Assembly (NCBI RefSeq): GCF_052425735.1
Contig: NC_135761.1
Span: 34,038,001 to 34,102,000, forward strand
Direction of reading: 5' to 3'
DNA from: Oculina patagonica
Lineage: Eukaryota
DNA length: 64,000 bases
A program made the position numbers and the translations under genes. A model generated the notes under the pieces. It made no database searches and was not told the DNA's origin. It saw nothing but the letters and a program-made list of their open reading frames with translations. Of this stretch, positions 32,891 to 43,673 are shown one piece after another (the stretch's first letter is position 1; the number at the start of each line of letters is the position of its first letter).

Positions 32891-33757
32891 ATTTAAATAA
32901 AATAAAAATGAAAACTTTATTTATCCTGAAGGGCCAATCAGTGATCATTAGATCACTGGTATAAACTGGCGATCAGCATTAAGTATAAAATACATCTATT
33001 CTTAAAGTTGTAGAAGATTTATATATATACATATTAAAAATTGACATTAAAAAAAAATACAAGTATTCTGGAGTTTATGTATCAAATTCAAGCATTTAAA
33101 AAGAAGAGCAAAGAGCATTTGACATTTTTTTTGCAAATCGTAAAATGATATACCTTGGGTACCACATATGGATCTGTTTTGACAATTTCTTCTATTTTCT
33201 TCCGCATCGCTTTAAAAAACCTTTATAACCTTTTTATATAACCTTTGCTTGAGAAAAAAAAAACGTTTCACAGGATGTTGAATTCAAAGTAGTTTTCATT
33301 GTGGCATTTCTGAGCATCTTACCGATGCGTTTCTTGCAGAGTTCTTGATTTCCATCCCTAGCATGGTTTAAACCATTTAGGCTGTCGCATTTACTGCAAG
33401 TATCTTTTCTTTAAGGCCAGTCCCTGGCCCTCGCCTCTATTGAGATAATATTTACCAGAGCAGAACTATTTTGTGCATGAGTGCACAAATTATGGATAAT
33501 TCCGGGCTCAAAACAAATGTGAACTTACTTTGCCAGCTTCTACTTCCTGTCAAGAGAAAGAAAAAGACGATTTTAGATCACAGAATAAATAACGAAATAG
33601 TTTCCGAGTCATGAAATATTAAAACGTCTGTGTGAGGCATGAAATAGACTTAAGGAGATAACATGTTATCAATTGAAAGATATTCATTAATGCATGCAAC
33701 AAGTACATATTACGCACGCCACCGATGTGTGGAATGGGACCCAATTTTCGCCTTGCT

Positions 33758-33768
33758 GCCCCGCCCAC
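33758..33768. promoter_or_regulatory. GC box (Sp/KLF-type) inside the left TIR; mirror copy at 37326-37336 in the right TIR
   Basis: GCCCCGCCCAC / GTGGGCGGGGC, each ~100-115 nt upstream of an inward-facing ATG. Confidence 0.45.
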
Positions 33769-33881
33769 TTTCGTTGTCAAATTCCATAAATTCCTTAGGC
33801 TCGCCAGTCTTCTGCGTGCGTTTGACCGCTTGCTCTCCTTCGCTCGCTTGATCGCGAAAATAAATCAGCTTTTTCTACACC

Positions 33882-35278
33882 ATGGAGAGAAACATGTTTA
33901 AAGTTATGGGTCCAGGCGACAAGTGGATAAAACTATTTTTATCAAGCGAAGAAATTGCAAGTCTAACTATGGATTCCCTGCTATCAAGAATTCAAGAACG
34001 ATTTCCTAGCCTAAGAAGAAGCACTGTGAGCGTGAAATATTAAGATGGAAATGATTGGATTAAACTGCCTGCAGACGATATCGACTCTTTCATCGATATG
34101 TTAGAAAGTGCACAGGAAGAAAGAGAAAACTTGAAGAGAGTGACCCTAAGAGTGAACGAAATTGCGTTCAGTCCACCAGGTTTATTGAAAGGCGCCACGG
34201 TGCAGACGGTGAAAACGGCACAGCAAAAACGTCTTCGGTCGTCGCCATCTACATCTCCAAATGCAGTAAGCGTTCCTGAAAGAAAGAAGCACAAAATAGC
34301 CACATCGAAATGCTTAGAAGAAAAATTCTGTGATACTACCGCTGAATGGAAATATGAAACGCCGACCCAAAAGTATTTCAACAAGCTCGAAGAAGAAAAA
34401 AAGCAACAACAGGATTTGGTGTTAAAGAAACAAAATGAGCTGTTGGAACTTGAGATGTCCTGTAAACCCTTAACTACAAATAAAAAGCCACTTTGCTCAA
34501 ATTGCCACACGCCAGGACATAATAAGACAATTTTCTCGTTCGCGGCTTGTGTGTCGGCATCGATTTGTAAGGACATCAAAAGGCATCCAGAGGAAGAAAA
34601 ACATTATAAAACTATTCAACCCGAACTCAAAGCTGCGAAAACAAAACTAAAGAAATTGGAAGAGGATATTGCCACCAAAAGAGAAAGTTTTGTCTCTAGT
34701 ATCAACACCTACGCAGCGAAAGTTCAAGCGGACTTGATTAACAGTAATCAGGCGAAATATTTACGACAAACAGCAACCGGCGACAAAGTCCCCATGATTG
34801 TAAACACGGACATTAGAAAGCTTGAAAAGATTTGCAAGGGCAAGGTTCCGCCAAAAGGTGAAATACAACAGCTTCTAAAGGAGTACGACGAAAACTTTTC
34901 TGTCACCCGAGTAAAAGCAAACACTGATCATTCTATTAACCCTGTGAGAAAACTTTGGGAACGAAAGGGAATCGTATTTCCTGGAAGCGGCGTGCTGCCA
35001 AACCGAAAGAGCGAGAGTGTCGCGAGTAGCGGTTGTTATTTTTATGGAAAACCTACTTCTACACCGGTCACTGGAACACCTATGCCTGCTTATCACAATT
35101 ATTATGTTACGAGCCCACAACTTTGGAAGAGGAAGAACGCCATCTCGAGAGAGGATTGAGTGAAAGTTTGAAAACCTGTCCTCCTGAAAGTTTGAAAACC
35201 TGTCCTCCTTCCTTTTCAAAGAAAGATGTCGACTCGGATTATGGTTTAAGCTTATTGTTTGAAGCAGCTATTTTATAA
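33882..35278 (+). pseudogene. Transposon ORF2: PB1-like N-terminus, CxxCHxxxH/CxxxxxCxxxxxH Zn-binding motif, coiled coil, acidic UIM-like tail; disrupted
   Basis: ATG 33882 is in frame with ORF 34098-35159 across one TAA (34041, in VKY*DGNDWIKL). A likely frameshift near 35080 leads into the 35033-35278 frame (EPTTLEEEERHLERGLSESL...GLSLLFEAAIL). Confidence 0.7.
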
Positions 35279-35533
35279 AAGGTACTGAAACCACAAGTAG
35301 TCGGAAAGGGAAACAAAAATGAATGTTCTACCTGGCACTAGTGAAGGGGGGACAGGGGCCGGTGCCAGGGGAAAAGGGGAAGGAAGTGGGAGAAAAGGCG
35401 GTAAGCGGGTCTCCTTAGGTGCAGGGAACCTGTAGAAAATAAAAATTTTGCAGCATTTCGTTATATTTCCCAATAGATATAAGACAGAAAAAGGCGGGAC
35501 GCGGAAGTTAAGGATACAACAGAGACCCCCTGT
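35273..35533. repeat. ~260-bp purine-rich dispersed repeat; near-identical copy at 42343-42604
   Basis: TTATAAAAGG(T/C)ACTGAAACCACAAG ... GGATACAACAGAGACCCCCTGT occurs at both positions. Confidence 0.9.
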
Positions 35534-36145
35534 TGGTGACTAATCAGTAACTCTATTTAAAACTTTATTATTCGTTGAGCTACTGAACAAACCCGTCTGC
35601 TACAGATAACAAATTGTTGTTTGATGACTTTGAATTTGAACTGTGAAATTTTAGGTAAAAGCCGAATTTTGTTTACTTACGCATTGTAATCCCACAGCTC
35701 TCTGTTGACAAAATATTAAATGTTATCTTTGTTGTTGTGTTTAAGTATTACATGTTAAAGTTTCTTATAGTTATAAATTGGCTTTGAACGCGTGAAAAAA
35801 TTACAAACGCAACATAAACATTGATGTACATGATTGGCGACGAGTAAACTTTTTTGTTTACACTCAGTGCGTGAAATAACATAAGGTTTGTAATAACTAT
35901 TGCTAAGTTGACAATATTTCACGGAATTTGTTACTTTGATCTTCGGAATTTTTAAATTACAAGGAAATCATTGAAGTTGTGCTAAAGTAAATAAAGAACA
36001 TAATTATGTTGATTCATGTCTGTTCTATTTGCAACCTTGTCTGCCTTGTGCTGCGCTCGAGTGTCACGAAATGCTTATCAAGTCAAGCTTCCCATTTGGA
36101 ACAATTTAAATTTGCCTTACAATGCAAGAGTTAGAAAGAGTAATG

Positions 36146-37225
36146 TTAAATGTAACCACAAAAGGCGAAAAAGCCTCTCATATCTTGGGATGTTATTTCT
36201 TTTAGCGCTTTGTGCACTGCCACGTGCAGACTGTCTTTTAAAAGTTCTCTATACTCGAAGCGTCTCAGAATAGTCTTAAGCTTGTTGAAAACATTTTCAG
36301 CAGGGTTAAATTCAGGAGAATATGTTGGTAAATAGACGACTGTGCAACCAATTTCATCCAGCCATTCGCCAAGAGCTTGTCCTGCCCGGTGATGATGAAT
36401 TGGCGCGTTGTCAATAATTACATGATCGCCATAACTGTACGCCGGCTTGCCATCGGGAAGATAAACTGAAGATGCTTCTTCGAAGAAAGAGAGAAAAGAA
36501 AACGAATTGCTGTTACCATCAACTGTGTTGGCATAGACAATGCCATCAAGACCACACATTAGATTTAAGGTAACATTAGGAGAATTGGCATATCGCACGA
36601 TCTCGACAGCCGGAGTGCCACAAAGCGAGTGGCCACTGTTGGGCCTACCAACATCTGGGAGCTTGATCCCGGATTCATCGAAGAACTTGAGTTTATAGGG
36701 GTCAACTGTGGAAATGTAGTTGACATAATCTTGACAGTAATTAAGATTGTCTGGGGTGAATTTCTCGGCAACGGGTCTTGTAAGCTTTTTCCAAGTCCAC
36801 TTTCCGTCGGTCATGTTTCGAAGCTCTCGCTGTATTGCTGAATTTGACGTTCCTCCAGGAATATCACAGTGCTCGCTGATATGCTTATGCAGCTCACCAA
36901 TAGTCATTGAAGCTCTGTCGGTCTTAAGAAATCTTACAAAGTCAGCATCATCTTGTTGAAGGTGTTTTACACCAGCTGTATGCCTTTCTGTGATTCCCGC
37001 ATTGCCGTTATCTACTAAGTCTTTCCAGATTTTTCGGACGGTATCATATTTGACTCTGTTTCTCTTAGCTATGACTGAAAAACTTCCAGGGAAAAAGCCG
37101 GTTACAAAATCGCCACAGTCTTCAACGATATCTTGTATTATTTTTCTTTTCAAGTCAACCTGAAGGGCTCTCCCGCGATCGTAAAATCTACCAAGCTTGC
37201 TGAATTCGGGTAAACCTTCTTCCAT
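36146..37225 (-). CDS. Intact DD37E transposase (IS630/Tc1/mariner, DDE_3 type) with paired-domain-like N-terminus, 359 aa
   Basis: Catalytic motifs KFFDESG, IIDNAPIHH and YSPEFNPAENVF, with 37 residues between the second D and E. N-terminal SKLGRFYDRGRAL..DLKRKII resembles the paired/PAI subdomain. The likely start is the ATG at 37225, since the upstream ORF extension lies in the TIR. Confidence 0.9.
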   Translation of the reverse strand: MEEGLPEFSKLGRFYDRGRALQVDLKRKIIQDIVEDCGDFVTGFFPGSFSVIAKRNRVKYDTVRKIWKDLVDNGNAGITERHTAGVKHLQQDDADFVRFLKTDRASMTIGELHKHISEHCDIPGGTSNSAIQRELRNMTDGKWTWKKLTRPVAEKFTPDNLNYCQDYVNYISTVDPYKLKFFDESGIKLPDVGRPNSGHSLCGTPAVEIVRYANSPNVTLNLMCGLDGIVYANTVDGNSNSFSFLSFFEEASSVYLPDGKPAYSYGDHVIIDNAPIHHHRAGQALGEWLDEIGCTVVYLPTYSPEFNPAENVFNKLKTILRRFEYRELLKDSLHVAVHKALKEITSQDMRGFFAFCGYI

Positions 37226-37618
37226 CGTAGAACCACTTCCTTGTTGATTTGAAAACGGCGCGAAAGTCTCTTGGCCGCCGTGGCATGTTGCGAGCTTTAG
37301 GAATTTATGGAATTTGTCAACGAAAGTGGGCGGGGCAGCAAAGCGAAAATTCAGTCCCATTCCATACATCGTGGCGTGCGTAGTAGTACCCTTTGAAAAC
37401 ACCTACCTTGACTTTCTCTGGTCTTTCTGCCATGGCTTTTGTTTTTTTGGGGGGGTTGTTTGCCGTATTTTTTCATGTGTTTATAAAAACATGGCGAAGT
37501 TGAAATTTTTTGCTCCACAGAAAAAGAAAAAGTTTTGTCATCCACTTTCAAATTTCTGGGCACCTTGCACGGTCCAATCACATGGGACCACAAGATGCAT
37601 GAAATACACTTTAGGTTT

Positions 37619-40600
37619 TGTAATAAACCAAGGACATGAATATTGTAGATCTACATGCTTTAATAATCACGAAGAAGAATGAATTGAAAATGTACATTGC
37701 ACAACAGGGATATCCGATTACCGATAACATGAATCGCACGTGACTAGATTATAACATTCCTCCCCCTTAAGACTTTTGCTATTTCCATTTAAAAAAGTAC
37801 ACAAAAACGCTGAACTGAAGTATAACAAAAACAATCATTAATGATTTTCACGTAATGTATGTCACGCAATAACTCTCGTTGATTGCTAATCAATGTTCAT
37901 GAGCAATGTCTCAGAAATTTTTAAAGTTCATAGTCCTTGAAACGTTCCGGTAAACGTCGGTTGCGGACTGGGCGTGATGGTTCAGCCTCTTGTGTGTCAG
38001 ACGAACTCGCGGCGACCGGCTTGGGAGGACTACTCGGTTGGGTTGTGTCTGCCGTGTAATCTGCCTCGGGCACCACTCCTGGTACCAAGATCTCAGGATT
38101 TGTCATTGTTGGGTCTTGATTGTGGTTTTTCCGCAAATGGTCCTGATGTCGTCGAACAACTCGACCATCCGGTAATTCTACTAGGGCTGAGACTGGGCCA
38201 GTTGCCTGCACCACAGTTCCTTTCTGCCAGGACTTGGGGGAACTGAAGTCCTTTATGAACACAGGATCACTGGCTTCAAAATTCCTGTGTTTGGCATGGT
38301 GGTCGTGGGTCTGTTTTTGATGTTCTTGCTTCTGTCTCACCAGACTTGCAGTGTTGGGAACTATGAGGTCGAGCTTAGTTCTCAGCTTTTTCTTCATCAG
38401 CAGCTCCGCTGGTGAAACCCCTGTTGTCGTGTGTGGCGTTGTTCTGTACTTTAGCAGAAAACGTGACAACTTGTCTTGCATGGTTCCCTCTTCCATCTTC
38501 TCTATCCCTTCTTTGAAGGCTCTCACTGCTCGCTCTGCCTGGCCATTCGAAGCTGGATGGTATGGTGCTACTTTGGTGTGTTTGATGCCGTTTTTTGAGA
38601 GGAAATTCTCAAACTCTGCACTTGTGAAATTGGGCCCATTGTCGCTGACGATGGTTTCTGGGAGACCATGGGTCGCGAAAATTTCCCTTAACTTCACAAT
38701 GGTGGCGGCTGATGTTGTACTTCGCATTATCTGGACATCCATCCATTTGGAATGTGCATCGATCACCACTAAATACATGTTGCCTTTGTATGGCCCTGCA
38801 TAATCAATGTGCACTCTTGACCAGGGTTGACCGGGCCACTCCCATGGGTGGAGAGGTGCTTCTGCTGGGGCCTTCTGGTGTAGCTGGCATTGCTGACACT
38901 TTTTCACGGCATCTTCTAGTTCACGATCCATATTTGGCCACCACACATAACCACGTGCAAGGGCTTTCATTCTTGATATGCCCGGATGGGCTTCGTGAAG
39001 CTCGGCTATGACTTGCTGTCGTCCTTGAGGTGGAACTATCACCCTGTTCCCCCATAGAACGCATCCACCTTCTATGGTTAACTCCGCTTTCCGGCTTAAA
39101 TATGGGTGTAGCTGTACATCCTGGCAGTGGTTTGGCCATCCATTAAGTGTAAACTGGTGCACTTTTGAGAGAACAGGATCGCGCCTTGTCCATTCTTGGA
39201 TATGTCGTGAGTTGACTGGGGTGTGGTCCAGATGTTCTAACAGCAAAACTGTCTCTCCAGGTACAGGAACTGACTCTGGCATCTTGGACAAGGGAAGTCG
39301 ACTTAATGCATCCGCATTGGCGTTTGTGTTCCCTGCTTTATAGGCAATCTTGTACTCGTATGCTGCCAAGGTAAGGGCCCACCGCTGAACTCTCGGAGAG
39401 GCTTGTTGAGGTACTCCTTTCTTCTCGTTAAAGAGCCCTTCCAGCGGCTTGTGATCAGTCTGTATGGTGAACTTCTGACCGTACAAGAACTGATTAAACT
39501 TCTTCACTCCGAAGATAATGGCCAAAGCCTCTTTTTCAATAGTGGAATAACCACGCTCAGCTGTGTTCAACGATCTTGAGACATAACCAATTGGGCGCTC
39601 TGTTCCATCTGCCATCCGGTGGGAAAGTACCGCCCCTACTCCATAATCGGAGGCATCACTCGCCAACATCAGTTCCAGATCTGGCTGGAAATGCACCAGG
39701 AGGTTTGCAGACTGAAGAAGTTTCTTGGATTTGTCGAAGGCCACCTGCTGCTCGGTCTTCCAAGACCACTTTGTACCTTGTCTAAGGAGCTTGTGCAGTG
39801 GTTCAAGTACTGTGGCGATGTCTGGTAGGAAACGATGATAATAATTCAGCATTCCCAGAAATGCTCGCAGCTGTGTAACATTCTCAGGCACTGGGGCATT
39901 CTGTATGGCTTCCACCTTAGCTTCTACTGGCTTGATACCACGACCATTGATCACATAACCACAATAGGTGACTTCCGGCACCATGAAGAAACACTTTTCT
40001 TTTCGCAACCGCAGCCCAGCTTCTGACAGCTTCTTAAGTACTGCTTCTAAATTGGCAATGTGATTGTTGTCGTCCTTCCCGCTGATGAGAATGTCGTCCA
40101 TTCGCACAATGACATGAGGAATGCCTTGCAAGAGGTTTTCCATTGTCCTCTGAAAGATACCAGGTGCAGAAGAGACTCCGAAAGGCAGTCTATTGTACTG
40201 AAATAGCCCTTTATGAGTGTTTATGGTGGTAAACTTTCGTGACTCCTCATCTAGCGTCATTTGCTGATATGCCTGCGACATGTCTAGCTTTGTAAATTTC
40301 TCACCACCTCCCAGAGTAGCCAGAAGATCTTCTGTCTTCGGTATTGGGTAATTGTCCAGTTTGGACACTTGATTGACTGTGAGTTTATAATCGCCACAGA
40401 TCCTTACAGTCCCGTTTGGCTTAGCGACTGGTACAATGGGTGCTGCCCATTCGGAAAATTCCACTGGCGATATAATCCCTTCACGCTCCAATCGTTCGAG
40501 TTCAAGTTCGACATTAGTTTTCAATGCGTACGGCACTGATCTTGCTTTGATATATTTGGGTTCGGCGTCTTGATCGACGTAGATCTTCGCCTTTACTCCT

Positions 40601-41994
40601 TTTAGCGTGCCCAATCCTTCCATGAATACATCGGGGTATTTCGAAAGCACGTTTTGAACTGCCGATGGGGGGCTTATCTCGCTTGCCACGTGAAAGATTG
40701 TGTTCCAATCTAAGCGGATTTTCTCCAACCAATCTCGACCAAGTAAATTTGGTCCGTCGCCTTTGACAATGATGGCGTTTAAATTCTTGTGCTGGCCTTC
40801 ATATTTCACTGGAACCATGACTGCTCCGAGTACTGGAATCTTTTCTCCTGTATAAGTAGTTAGGACTGCTTTTGATGTTTGAAGTGGACCCAATGCGTCA
40901 CGCAATCTTTCGTAAGTTGCTTCGTTTAGTATCGTCTTCGACGCACCCGTGTCAATTTCCATCGTGTTTTTCCGTCCACAAAGTTCTAGATCCACTTTGA
41001 ACGATTTCTTCCGATCGCTGGACAAATGATACATGGCATAGACATCATCTTGATCGGCGCTTTCTTCGACAAAGTGCGTTCTTTTACCATCTGGCCGGCG
41101 CCCACGTTTGGCCTGTTTTTGCGATTTCTTCTTTCCTTGACACACTTTAGCCATGTGGCCTTTCTTTTGGCACTTGTAGCACACTTCATTCTTAAACTTG
41201 CAGCTCGAGGGATCGTGGTTTCCACCGCAGCGATAGCACTCTTGTTTTGGCTGAAAATTCGGAGGTTTAGCTTCTTCGACCTTGTTGACATTGTTGTCGC
41301 TGCCGGGCGTCTTGCCGCCTAAATCCTTTACATTCCTGTTTGCCATTTCGGTCGCTGTAGCGATTTCCACCGCCTTTTCGAATGTGAGCTCCCGTTCGGC
41401 CAACAGTCGTCGTTGAATGCGATCATCGCTGATTCCACAGACGAGTCGATCCCGTAGCATGTCTTCGAGTGTTCTTCCAAACTGGCAATGCTCTGAAAGC
41501 CTTCTGAGTCCTGCGACGAACTCTGCAACATTTTCCCCTTCGAGGCGACTCCTGCTATGGAATTTAAATCGCTCGACGATCACACTTGGCTTCGGCGAGA
41601 AGTGGTTTTCCAGCTTTTCCAAGATCTCTTTTAAATCCACCTCGCCCGGTTTCTCGGGTTGTAACAAATCGCGAATTAACCCGTACGTTTTGCTTCCACA
41701 AACGCTTAGCAGGATAGCTCTTTGTTTCTTCTCGTCTTTAATTTCGTTTGCGGCGAAGTACTGCTCGAGCCTTTCCGCGTATTGAGTCCACGATTCCTCT
41801 GACTCCTTAAATTCACCTACGTTCCCGAAGGTTGCCATGTTTTTCCTCGTCGCCAATGTAATAAACCAAGGACACGAATATTGTAGATCTACATGCTTTA
41901 ATAATCACGAAGAAGAATGAATTGAAAATGTACATTGCACAACAGGGATATCCGATTACCGATAACATGAATCGCACGTGACTAGATTATAACA
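37619..41994 (-). mobile_element. Full-length Ty3/Gypsy (Mag-like) LTR retrotransposon
   Basis: 138-bp LTRs at 37619-37756 and 41857-41994 with one mismatch; perfect 5-bp TSD GGTTT; PBS TGGCGACGAGGA (tRNA-Ser(GCU)-like); PPT AAGGGGGAGGAA. Confidence 0.98.
37921..41838 (-). CDS. Gag-Pol polyprotein, single intact ORF (~1305 aa from the ATG at 41838)
   Basis: Two Zn knuckles (CYRCGGNH...C, CYKCQKKGHMAKVC), protease IDTGAS, RT (LPFG...VRMDD), RNase H (DASDYG, EKEALA, TDHKPL), integrase HHCC and DDE (HIDYAGP, SDNGPNF, GQAER). Confidence 0.97.
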   Translation of the reverse strand: MATFGNVGEFKESEESWTQYAERLEQYFAANEIKDEKKQRAILLSVCGSKTYGLIRDLLQPEKPGEVDLKEILEKLENHFSPKPSVIVERFKFHSRSRLEGENVAEFVAGLRRLSEHCQFGRTLEDMLRDRLVCGISDDRIQRRLLAERELTFEKAVEIATATEMANRNVKDLGGKTPGSDNNVNKVEEAKPPNFQPKQECYRCGGNHDPSSCKFKNEVCYKCQKKGHMAKVCQGKKKSQKQAKRGRRPDGKRTHFVEESADQDDVYAMYHLSSDRKKSFKVDLELCGRKNTMEIDTGASKTILNEATYERLRDALGPLQTSKAVLTTYTGEKIPVLGAVMVPVKYEGQHKNLNAIIVKGDGPNLLGRDWLEKIRLDWNTIFHVASEISPPSAVQNVLSKYPDVFMEGLGTLKGVKAKIYVDQDAEPKYIKARSVPYALKTNVELELERLEREGIISPVEFSEWAAPIVPVAKPNGTVRICGDYKLTVNQVSKLDNYPIPKTEDLLATLGGGEKFTKLDMSQAYQQMTLDEESRKFTTINTHKGLFQYNRLPFGVSSAPGIFQRTMENLLQGIPHVIVRMDDILISGKDDNNHIANLEAVLKKLSEAGLRLRKEKCFFMVPEVTYCGYVINGRGIKPVEAKVEAIQNAPVPENVTQLRAFLGMLNYYHRFLPDIATVLEPLHKLLRQGTKWSWKTEQQVAFDKSKKLLQSANLLVHFQPDLELMLASDASDYGVGAVLSHRMADGTERPIGYVSRSLNTAERGYSTIEKEALAIIFGVKKFNQFLYGQKFTIQTDHKPLEGLFNEKKGVPQQASPRVQRWALTLAAYEYKIAYKAGNTNANADALSRLPLSKMPESVPVPGETVLLLEHLDHTPVNSRHIQEWTRRDPVLSKVHQFTLNGWPNHCQDVQLHPYLSRKAELTIEGGCVLWGNRVIVPPQGRQQVIAELHEAHPGISRMKALARGYVWWPNMDRELEDAVKKCQQCQLHQKAPAEAPLHPWEWPGQPWSRVHIDYAGPYKGNMYLVVIDAHSKWMDVQIMRSTTSAATIVKLREIFATHGLPETIVSDNGPNFTSAEFENFLSKNGIKHTKVAPYHPASNGQAERAVRAFKEGIEKMEEGTMQDKLSRFLLKYRTTPHTTTGVSPAELLMKKKLRTKLDLIVPNTASLVRQKQEHQKQTHDHHAKHRNFEASDPVFIKDFSSPKSWQKGTVVQATGPVSALVELPDGRVVRRHQDHLRKNHNQDPTMTNPEILVPGVVPEADYTADTTQPSSPPKPVAASSSDTQEAEPSRPVRNRRLPERFKDYEL

Positions 41995-43673
41995 GGTTTA
42001 GATTTGAATCGGGCCGCAGAGAAGAGCCCCATACCCATAGAAAATTAACAACCCCATGCTTTCTAATTTAATTTTAATTCTAATGTAAAAAAGACTGCGT
42101 TCTAATAGGGAACTTAAAGTATCACCTACGTCACTAAAATAAGAATACATACATAAAAATTAAAAAATGACAAACAGGGAGGGGGGAGGGTGGTTAACCC
42201 CATGCTTTTGGTTTTTCACGGTCATCATGACTGGCGACAACGACGCCCCAACATGGCGGCCATGCTTCAGAAGTCCATTGAAGGTTATGGTTGCCGTCAG
42301 CTTATGCTAAGCAATCTTTTGTCCACAATAGTGCAATTAATTTTATAAAAGGCACTGAAACCACAAGTAGTCGGAAAGGGAAACAAAAATGAATGTTCTA
42401 CCTGGCACTAGTGAAGGGGGGGGACAGGGGCCGGTGCCAGGGGAAAAGGGGAAGGAAGTGGGAGAAAAGGCGGGAAGCGGGTCTCCTAAGGTGCAGGGAA
42501 CCTGTAGAAAATAAAAATTTCGCAGCATTTCGTTATATTTCCCAATAGATATAAGACAGAAAAAGGCGGGACGCGGAAGTTAAGGATACAACAGAGACCC
42601 CCTGTACCCCTCCACACAAATTACTTACCATGAGGTTGAAAAGGCCCTGGTGGTCATGTCCTTATGTCCATTAAATTAGGCCCAGGTGGCCTCGTCCTTA
42701 TGTTCATTTAACTTGGCGCAGATGGCCTCGTCGTAGTTTTATGTGTCCATTAAACTAGGCATATTAGTTCTGCCGTTTCTATTCATCAAAGGTCTCATGA
42801 TACCCCGTCCACTGGTGCAAGATACTGGTGTTGTCTGAATGGTCATTAGCGGTTGAATACCATTGTTTGCAGGCCGTCTTCTCTCCCTACTATTAAGTCC
42901 TCTGGCATAAACATCGCAAGAAGAATGCATTGGAAACGACAGCCTGCTGTGCCACGCAGTGCGTGGTCGAAACCTTTTCTTGAAGAACTAAGAGGCTTTA
43001 AGTTTTACTACTTTTTGGTCTAGTAAAACTTTCTGTGTTTGTTGGTCGGACTCTGCACAATGACTTTGCACTGTTAGACAAAAATGACAAAAGTGTTACC
43101 ATCGCCTGTAGCCAGAGTCATAAATATCTGGCCCATACTGCCATACTAAGAACCAATCATTGTAGGATTCATTACTGTGGCCAAAAAATTAAATGGTTAT
43201 ATTGATGGTAATATTATTGTACCATACTAAGCTAAAGTAGTTAACAAAAAAAGGTCTTACTTTTAAAAGAAGTATTGTATTTGAACGCTGCATCAATAAT
43301 CTGTAGCAATACCAAATCGATGGTAAAGGTGTCATTTCCGTAATTTAAATGGCACTAAACAGAAAAAAAGAGTTTAAAAACTCTATAATGATAAACTTAA
43401 GTACACGTTTAACTCTAAACTATCTTTCTCTTCCGATATGTGGTATTTCCTGAGTTTCTGTTCCTGTGTTTCAAGGCTGGTGACAACTGAACATTGTTAA
43501 ATCAACAATGTACATTTAAAATGCAGTGAATTACGGGTAGTTTGCTATATACTTGTGTTTGTGATCATTTAAAATTCTTGAATGATGAAATGACACATCA
43601 AATTCATGCTAGACTGGCTGTCAGAAGTTGTCTCTCTTTTCTCTCATTTTCTCTTTCTTAAAGAAGTTTAAGA

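Follow-up and report, generated by a model that had tools for sequence, protein, structure and literature searches.

What does the interrupted reading frame beside an open transposase gene at this locus encode, and does it belong to the transposon that carries it? The locus occupies positions 33882–35278 of a 64,000-nucleotide stretch of the Oculina patagonica genome (NCBI RefSeq assembly GCF_052425735.1, contig NC_135761.1, positions 34,038,001–34,102,000 of the forward strand); this whole stretch is referred to as the window and all positions are counted within it. Tc1/mariner-type elements are the classic example of transposons with one gene, and gene-transfer tools have been built on them. 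An initial annotation, made from the sequence alone, had read the frame as a transposon cargo protein with PB1-like, zinc-finger, coiled-coil, ubiquitin-interacting motif (UIM)-like and Sin3-interaction domain (SID)-like parts. The region is shown here to be a pseudogene, a decayed copy of the second open reading frame (ORF2) of a two-gene transposon in a stony coral genome. ORF2 is a core gene of this element, inherited with the transposase, and its protein is a putative adaptor of the transposition machinery to host systems.

The element and its transposase

The element is a 3.67-kb two-gene DNA transposon of the DD37E IS630/Tc1/mariner type and spans positions 33710–37383 (Table 1). Its inverted ends are about 100 nt long, and an inverted repeat of 82 nt (33723–33804 and 37290–37371, 91% complementary) encloses both ORF2 and the transposase gene. 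In an alignment of eight copies, similarity begins directly after the TA dinucleotide in seven (six other loci and the window), the eighth copy being without the terminus. When the transposase is aligned to SB100X, a DD34E enzyme, the spacing from the second Asp to the Glu is 37 residues (D273 and E311 of the 360-residue query) and the alignment contains a three-residue gap; these three extra residues relative to Sleeping Beauty identify the enzyme as DD37E. Compared with other copies, the window transposase has a ratio of nonsynonymous to synonymous substitution rates (dN/dS) of 0.10–0.15 at a dS of 0.12–0.15, with the frame open and the D-D-E residues kept.

A contig from one sequencing run (X15) joins position 33707 to 37385, skipping the whole 3677-nt element, at a depth of 39, with a shorter side of 27 nt and one extra letter at the joint. 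This junction may represent an allele without the insertion or a further copy of a repeated flanking sequence.

Linkage of ORF2 to the transposase and selection on ORF2

ORF2 and the transposase were each used as a query against the 529-Mb genome, and loci were considered paired when a transposase homologue lay within 12 kb. By this measure 55 of the 60 ORF2-homologous loci are paired with a transposase, mostly at a spacing of 0.4–2.3 kb, and the pairing persists at ORF2 identities as low as 24–36% and transposase identities of 29–52%. The two genes are convergent at 30 of the paired loci and in tandem at the remainder, with ORF2 first at 13 and the transposase first at 12. Three loci were examined in other assemblies: a transposase lies beside the ORF2 relative in two, and the third contig is too short to tell. 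On an ENA contig a 573-residue ORF2 relative is convergent with a DDE_3 gene, and in GCA_013332695.1 (locus L045) a 587-residue relative is divergent from one. Gene order therefore varies between subfamilies (convergent, two tandem orders and, in L045, divergent), with the pairing itself maintained. Clustered at 50% identity, the ORF2 family comprises 832 clusters at E ≤ 1e-3, and 110 clusters at the stricter threshold of E ≤ 1e-30.

A distant subfamily (loci L021–L025 with L041–L042, e.g. C5:18781129–18784290) shares 25% ORF2 identity and 41% transposase identity with the window element. At least five near-identical copies of it each carry an intact ORF2 (476 residues) and an open paired transposase (387 residues), which implies that two-gene elements have moved recently and suggests that the activity of this subfamily is very recent.

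ORF2 is under purifying selection. Within subfamilies its dN/dS is 0.37 (L003/L004), 0.36 (L011/L012) and 0.27 (L021/L025), with an overall range of 0.27–0.38 rather than the values near 1 that the initial annotation had named as speaking against it; between two subfamilies the proportion of nonsynonymous differences (pN) is 0.27 versus a saturated synonymous proportion (pS) of 0.75. It evolves faster than the transposase (0.37 versus 0.10–0.15). Taken as a whole, the number of paired loci, the persistence of linkage down to about 25% identity and the pairing in other organisms contradict the description of ORF2 as cargo and place it among the core genes of the element.

Decay of the ORF2 copy in the window

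The ATG at 33882 (forward strand) opens a frame of 53 codons (33882–34040) that ends at a TAA codon (34041–34043), resumes at 34044 and continues to 35156; the UIM-like and C-terminal motifs fall in the frame of 35033–35278. The reference for lesions was a natural intact copy of 469 residues in the same genome (L004:1339-2745), which is uninterrupted and 96% identical at the DNA level. All inferences about the intact protein were drawn from natural intact copies, without a consensus or a repaired frame, and the window copy was searched in pieces; a Pfam search with these separate pieces matched no family.

Relative to L004, the window ORF2 carries five lesions (Table 1). The stop and the frameshift near 35080 had both been recognized in the initial annotation and are borne out by the comparison, the latter as a 4-nt deletion; the Cys216Phe substitution, the 6-nt deletion and the 264-nt block had been missed. 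The original Gly-Asp-stop of ORF2 is now displaced to 35535–35543, on the 3′ side of this block. Contigs from four public runs show the intact letters at each lesion that they cover, so the lesions are private to the window copy. The 264-nt block is skipped in contigs of all four runs, three of which read AAATGGTC, while one skips 261 nt with AAATG.

The window ORF2 contains 13 private substitutions, about ten of them nonsynonymous, as neutral decay would give, together with four indels. The window transposase has 30 private changes and no indel. The earlier statement that ORF2 is decaying while the transposase stays intact thus agrees with the lesions and substitutions on one side and with the open, constrained transposase on the other. 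The contrast between the two halves of the element may reflect an older lineage split of the transposase half or a chimeric copy.

Two length variants were observed within ORF2. A 24-nt exact tandem duplication (35161–35208, forward strand), by which ESLKTCPP occurs twice, is shared by the window copy and L004, and L003 has a single unit. A contig from run X8, which carries another organism label, joins 34157 to 34278 and so lacks 120 nt of the linker, a loss of 40 codons that keeps the frame; the ends of the skipped segment (GA..CT) are not intron-like and a deletion variant is probable.

The N-terminal PB1 domain

In an AlphaFold2 model of the intact copy, residues 1–95 are predicted with a local distance difference test score (pLDDT) of about 90 and the order β-β-α-β-β-α-β. 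A Foldseek search against the PDB returned PB1 domains as seven of the ten best matches (template-modelling (TM) score by target 0.57–0.76, probability 1.0), among them PKC-ζ/p62, Cdc24, AtNBR1, NBR1, Par6/PKC-ι and p40/p67phox; the modest E-values (2.6e-3 to 1e-2) result from querying with the full-length protein. A profile built from 30 N-termini of the family matched the PB1 domains of AtNBR1 (E = 1.1e-4) and Cdc24 (E = 1.7e-4) in the PDB, aligning the β1 lysine and the Y-x-D-E-D-G-D acidic run with those of AtNBR1. A single-sequence search of the intact protein against the PDB gave coiled-coil noise only.

The Pfam PB1 family (PF00564) is matched by 16 of the 30 family N-termini. In a sister clade four of eight members lie above the cut-off (25.1–30.6 bits versus 23.6); no direct match was obtained for the window's own clade, the N-terminal profile of which aligns with that of the PB1-positive sister clade in hhalign at a probability of 99.4% (E = 5e-22). 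Lys7, Tyr53, Asp55 and Asp66 are invariant in the window clade. The OPCA-type run is canonical in relatives (FRDEDGDYVNL, YADEDGDFVNL) and weaker in the window clade (YYDGNDWIEL...DD.DSF). By predicted fold, by profile and, through its relatives, by Pfam, the ORF2 N-terminus is a PB1 domain.

Linker, predicted zinc hairpin and central domain

The PB1 domain is followed by a disordered linker (pLDDT ~30) containing a basic/Ser-Pro motif that is conserved as KR-x-R-x-S-P-S-P, with Arg115, Ser119 and Pro120 invariant or nearly so in alignment A2. In the window it reads KRLRSSPS, a candidate nuclear-localization signal.

The middle region (residues 150–372), modelled with a deep alignment, has a mean pLDDT of 91.6 and consists of two long antiparallel helices with a Cys/His module at the tip, followed by a compact α/β domain. 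Across 85 diverse relatives Cys206, His207, His211, Cys221 and His233 are invariant, and Cys203, Gly210, Cys216 and Cys227 are conserved in more than 90%. In intact copies Cys203, Cys206, His211 and Cys216 are spaced exactly as in a C-X2-C-X4-H-X4-C knuckle; of these the window copy has lost Cys216. The four further Cys/His residues suggest a putative second metal site. In the central domain Tyr291, Trp304, Cys318, Gly320 and Pro323 are invariant in A2.

Searches with the central region by PDB profile, Foldseek, VIA and Atlas shape search returned generic helical hairpins or matches with TM < 0.35 only; SMC hinge arms are among these hairpins, as is the Rad50 rod in the Foldseek results. An ESM Atlas feature search gave no usable match. 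A relationship to Gag/nucleocapsid proteins was considered and rejected, the knuckle spacing being the one feature shared and the Atlas TM score about 0.3.

Motifs of the C-terminal tail

The tail contains a UIM-like motif followed by an amphipathic helix at the extreme C-terminus (Table 1). Canonical UIM patterns are seen in more distant relatives, for example EEEEEQLKIALSIS and EEEEAQLEIALQAS. Among 81 non-redundant tails a loose UIM-type pattern occurs in 45 (about one in shuffled sequences) and a strict pattern in 14 (0.0 in shuffled sequences); 33 tails end in an Ala/Leu helix pattern (0.1 in shuffled sequences).

The Mad-family SID follows the pattern φ-Z-Z-φ-φ-X-A-A-X-X-φ (PMC1557813), and binders of the Sin3 PAH2 domain share the consensus φ-x-x-L-φ-x-φ-A, the TGIF1 binder likewise using a C-terminal helix (PMC8657803). 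LSLLFEAAKMV and its clade variants fit both as a pattern match only. PAH2 accepts helices in both orientations (PMC1557813), and the mirrored AAxALLxL pattern of other subfamilies would thus be compatible with PAH2 binding.

The architecture proposed at the outset has therefore held in its parts: the PB1-like N-terminus is predicted as a β-grasp fold with PB1 domains as its best structural matches, the zinc-finger and coiled-coil parts correspond in the model to eight conserved Cys/His residues capping an antiparallel coiled-coil hairpin, and both tail motifs recur in homologues well above the shuffled background.

Table 1. Features of the transposon and of its ORF2 copy in the window
Feature	Position	Strand	Basis or remark
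Left TA target-site duplication	33708..33709	.	Copy alignment; twin TA at 37384-37385
Left terminal inverted repeat	33710..33806	+	Upstream of ORF2 start; alignment reaches terminus
PB1 domain, residues 1-95	33882..34166	+	AlphaFold2, Foldseek, profile; interrupted by TAA 34041-34043
Lesion: premature stop	34041-34043	+	T>A at 34043, Tyr54 to stop (versus L004)
Basic/Ser-Pro motif KRLRSSPS	34227..34250	+	Disordered linker, pLDDT ~30
First long helix of predicted antiparallel coiled-coil hairpin	34362..34460	+	Helix 159-191; middle model 10-43, pLDDT >90
Predicted zinc module at hairpin tip	34494..34586	+	C-X2-C-X4-H-X4-C knuckle plus His207, Cys221, Cys227, His233
Lesion: Cys216Phe	codon 34533-34535	+	G>T at 34534; Cys >90% conserved across 85 relatives
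Second long helix of predicted hairpin	34587..34700	+	Helix 234-271; middle model 85-122
Predicted central alpha/beta domain	34710..34964	+	pLDDT 94-97; best-conserved part of family; bears 6-nt deletion after 34794
Lesion: 6-nt deletion	after 34794	+	Trp304-Leu305 lost; Trp304 invariant in alignment A2
Lesion: frameshift, 4-nt deletion	35081..35082 (after 35081)	+	ATCA present in L004 and contigs of three of four runs
UIM-like motif EEEERHLERGLSESL	35126..35170	+	Shifted frame; predicted helix 416-432; conserved in A2
C-terminal amphipathic helix DYGLSLLFEAA, SID-like	35237..35269	+	At extreme C-terminus throughout clade
Lesion: 264-nt foreign block	35271..35534	+	Takes place of 8 nt, truncates ORF2; final five codons lost
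DD37E transposase (DDE_3)	36146..37225	-	359 codons, open, convergent with ORF2; Pfam DDE_3 E 4.7e-19
Right terminal inverted repeat	37287..37383	-	Followed by TA at 37384-37385

Proposed function and alternatives

The ORF2 protein is, with moderate confidence and as judged from sequence and models, a putative trans-acting adaptor of the transposition machinery to host chromatin and ubiquitin systems. PB1 domains with both the lysine and the acidic cluster, as in p62 and NBR1, are of the type able to polymerize head to tail, and the ORF2 protein could self-associate in this manner. The zinc-capped hairpin and the central domain would then hold nucleic acid (the element ends or RNA) or the transposase, and the two tail peptides might contact ubiquitin-marked proteins of the host and a Sin3-type corepressor. 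If the protein acts in trans, a copy such as that in the window can do without its own ORF2 and still keep an open transposase frame. The initial annotation had inferred a chromatin- or ubiquitin-linked regulator, perhaps an anti-silencing factor or self-repressor. The net effect of such a protein may be to promote transposition, to restrain it or to counteract host defence; the balance leans towards a positive cofactor, since recently active copies retain ORF2.

Several observations weigh against this proposal. The tail-motif patterns were devised after the sequences had been seen. The Pfam UIM model (PF02809, 17 positions long) matches one of ten relatives, at 14.2 bits versus a cut-off of 21, and does not match intact L004, and the window clade has Gly in the UIM position of the key Ala. 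The extreme C-terminus reads DYGLSLLF-x-AAK in the window clade and AA-x-ALL-x-L in other subfamilies, and its helix is predicted by AlphaFold2 at low confidence. The zf-CCHC family (PF00098) gave no Pfam match at E ≤ 1, and the central domain is without a recognisable structural relative, its second half (model residues 124–223) being barely covered. As to linkage, some transposase homologues have no ORF2 match nearby, as judged by hit coordinates and 1.5-kb flanks, so that certain lineages may do without ORF2; a test of co-divergence between the two genes (ρ = 0.56, p = 0.09, ten non-independent pairs) is weak and suggestive only. That the runs containing the element are RNA is no more than a guess, and the presence of both genes on one contig is what DNA would give.

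It is possible, if on the unlikely side, that ORF2 is a positive transposition cofactor in the style of the Harbinger Myb-like protein. In this case it would recruit the transposase to the element ends or carry it into the nucleus, and would link the two ends by oligomerization, the tail motifs being secondary. The pairing with the transposase, stable over deep divergence and kept in recently active copies, is consistent with such a role, and PB1 together with a zinc module capping a coiled-coil hairpin would be suited to bridging, with the basic linker motif also in its favour; however, no DNA-binding fold was recognized, ORF2 is less constrained than the transposase and the transposase relatives with no ORF2 detected nearby tell against this role as well. 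A smaller likelihood is given to ORF2 being a polymerizing scaffold like p62 or NBR1, in which PB1 filaments or condensates would form round the transposition complex and the UIM and Sin3-binding helix would couple transposition to ubiquitin signalling and histone deacetylation. More doubtful again is the reading of ORF2 as a repressor that limits its own element: bound there, it would recruit Sin3 and histone deacetylase by the C-terminal helix, so that element expression is damped and the host spared. The fit of LSLLFEAAKMV to both binding patterns and the position of the helix, terminal like that of TGIF1 (PMC8657803) and conserved in the clade, point in this direction, but the argument is one of motif matching, other subfamilies carry AAxALLxL and the UIM and PB1 would go unexplained.

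Equally doubtful is the view that the tail motifs arose by convergence in a disordered, low-complexity region, with function confined to the PB1 domain and the zinc/coiled-coil core. The Pfam UIM scores are sub-threshold, the tail is modelled at low confidence, and it varies in length and is less conserved than any other part of the protein; against this stand the very strong enrichment over shuffled sequences (45 of 81 versus about one, and 33 of 81 versus 0.1), the conservation of particular positions (the acidic run, hydrophobic residues, Ala/Gly and Ser) and the constancy with which the second motif stays at the extreme C-terminus. PB1 and UIM are elsewhere characteristic of signalling and adaptor proteins of the host, as would be expected if ORF2 were a captured host gene, that is true cargo, or an unrelated neighbour. 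This is very improbable: transposase pairing at 55 of 60 loci, in three gene orders, at 24–36% ORF2 identity and in other assemblies speaks strongly against a captured host gene, and no stand-alone host paralogue appears among the best matches.

Neighbouring sequences

The 264-nt block (about 35270–35534) has a 98% identical twin at 42340–42605, 7.07 kb to the right, and one other full-length copy in the genome (84%). A 138-nt pair (37619–37756 and 41857–41994, 99%) brackets a neighbouring Ty3/gypsy-type gag-pol frame (37921–41856, reverse strand), which runs for 1311 uninterrupted codons about 0.5 kb past the right end of the transposon and the translation of which shows zinc-knuckle, protease, reverse transcriptase and integrase motifs. 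These nested direct repeats take in the gypsy frame and the DNA transposon's right half and leave its left half outside. They may have arisen from a solo long terminal repeat and a second insertion, from ectopic conversion or from misassembly.

Significance

The long retention of a second protein, with about 830 clusters of relatives, points to a need that the transposase alone does not meet. What this analysis adds is the domain and motif reading of ORF2, which gives testable predictions for a protein of unknown function. If the scaffold interpretation were true, a superfamily in which the transposase is generally taken to suffice would include a protein devoted to the interface with the host. 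The putative adaptor bears on how transposons handle host chromatin and protein turnover in corals and other marine invertebrates.

Comparison with known systems

The DD37E(L31) family of the Tc1/mariner group was founded on Mariner-31_CGi of the Pacific oyster (PMC7325037; bioRxiv 10.1101/656579), and the L31 group is attributed to Puzakov et al. (2018) in the passages of these two papers that cite that work. The window element probably belongs to this group on the basis of its DD37E signature, TA duplications, inverted ends and second ORF. The best named protein matches are from Oculina patagonica itself; the named transposase relatives come from corals, an octocoral and a hemichordate, not from bivalves. 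A literature search found the DD37E(L31) family name and no paper on its ORF2. Later studies of L31 elements in bivalves reportedly describe a second ORF, of unknown function, as usual in full-length elements and name cnidarians as further hosts. To our knowledge no domain reading of the L31 ORF2 has been published.

PIF/Harbinger elements resemble the present element in having a second, non-catalytic gene beside a DDE transposase, a cut-and-paste mechanism and variable gene orientation. They differ in transposase superfamily and in the accessory protein, which is of the Myb/SANT type and unrelated to the ORF2 protein; the cofactor role of the Myb-like protein has been shown, whereas ORF2 is a putative cofactor. 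With the retroviral-type CCHC knuckle (zf-CCHC) ORF2 shares the exact C-X2-C-X4-H-X4-C spacing with Gly-His, but its module is unmatched in Pfam, has four extra Cys/His residues, sits at a hairpin tip and is not part of a Gag protein. The likeness to the SIDs of Mad1 and TGIF1 is at the motif level only and consists of a short amphipathic helix that fits both patterns and is C-terminal as in TGIF1; the other ORF2 subfamilies differ in carrying AAxALLxL.

The comparison with p62/SQSTM1 and NBR1 concerns the general layout. The order of a PB1 domain, a zinc module, a coiled coil and an element for ubiquitin binding, putative in ORF2, is alike, and the PB1 domains share the acidic cluster and the β1 lysine (E = 1.1e-4 to AtNBR1 PB1, highest TM score 0.76). 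The ORF2 zinc module is, however, not a ZZ domain, a UIM-type peptide takes the place of the UBA domain, no LC3-interacting region is seen and the protein is encoded by a transposon. The PB1 domain alone is homologous between ORF2 and these scaffold and receptor proteins.

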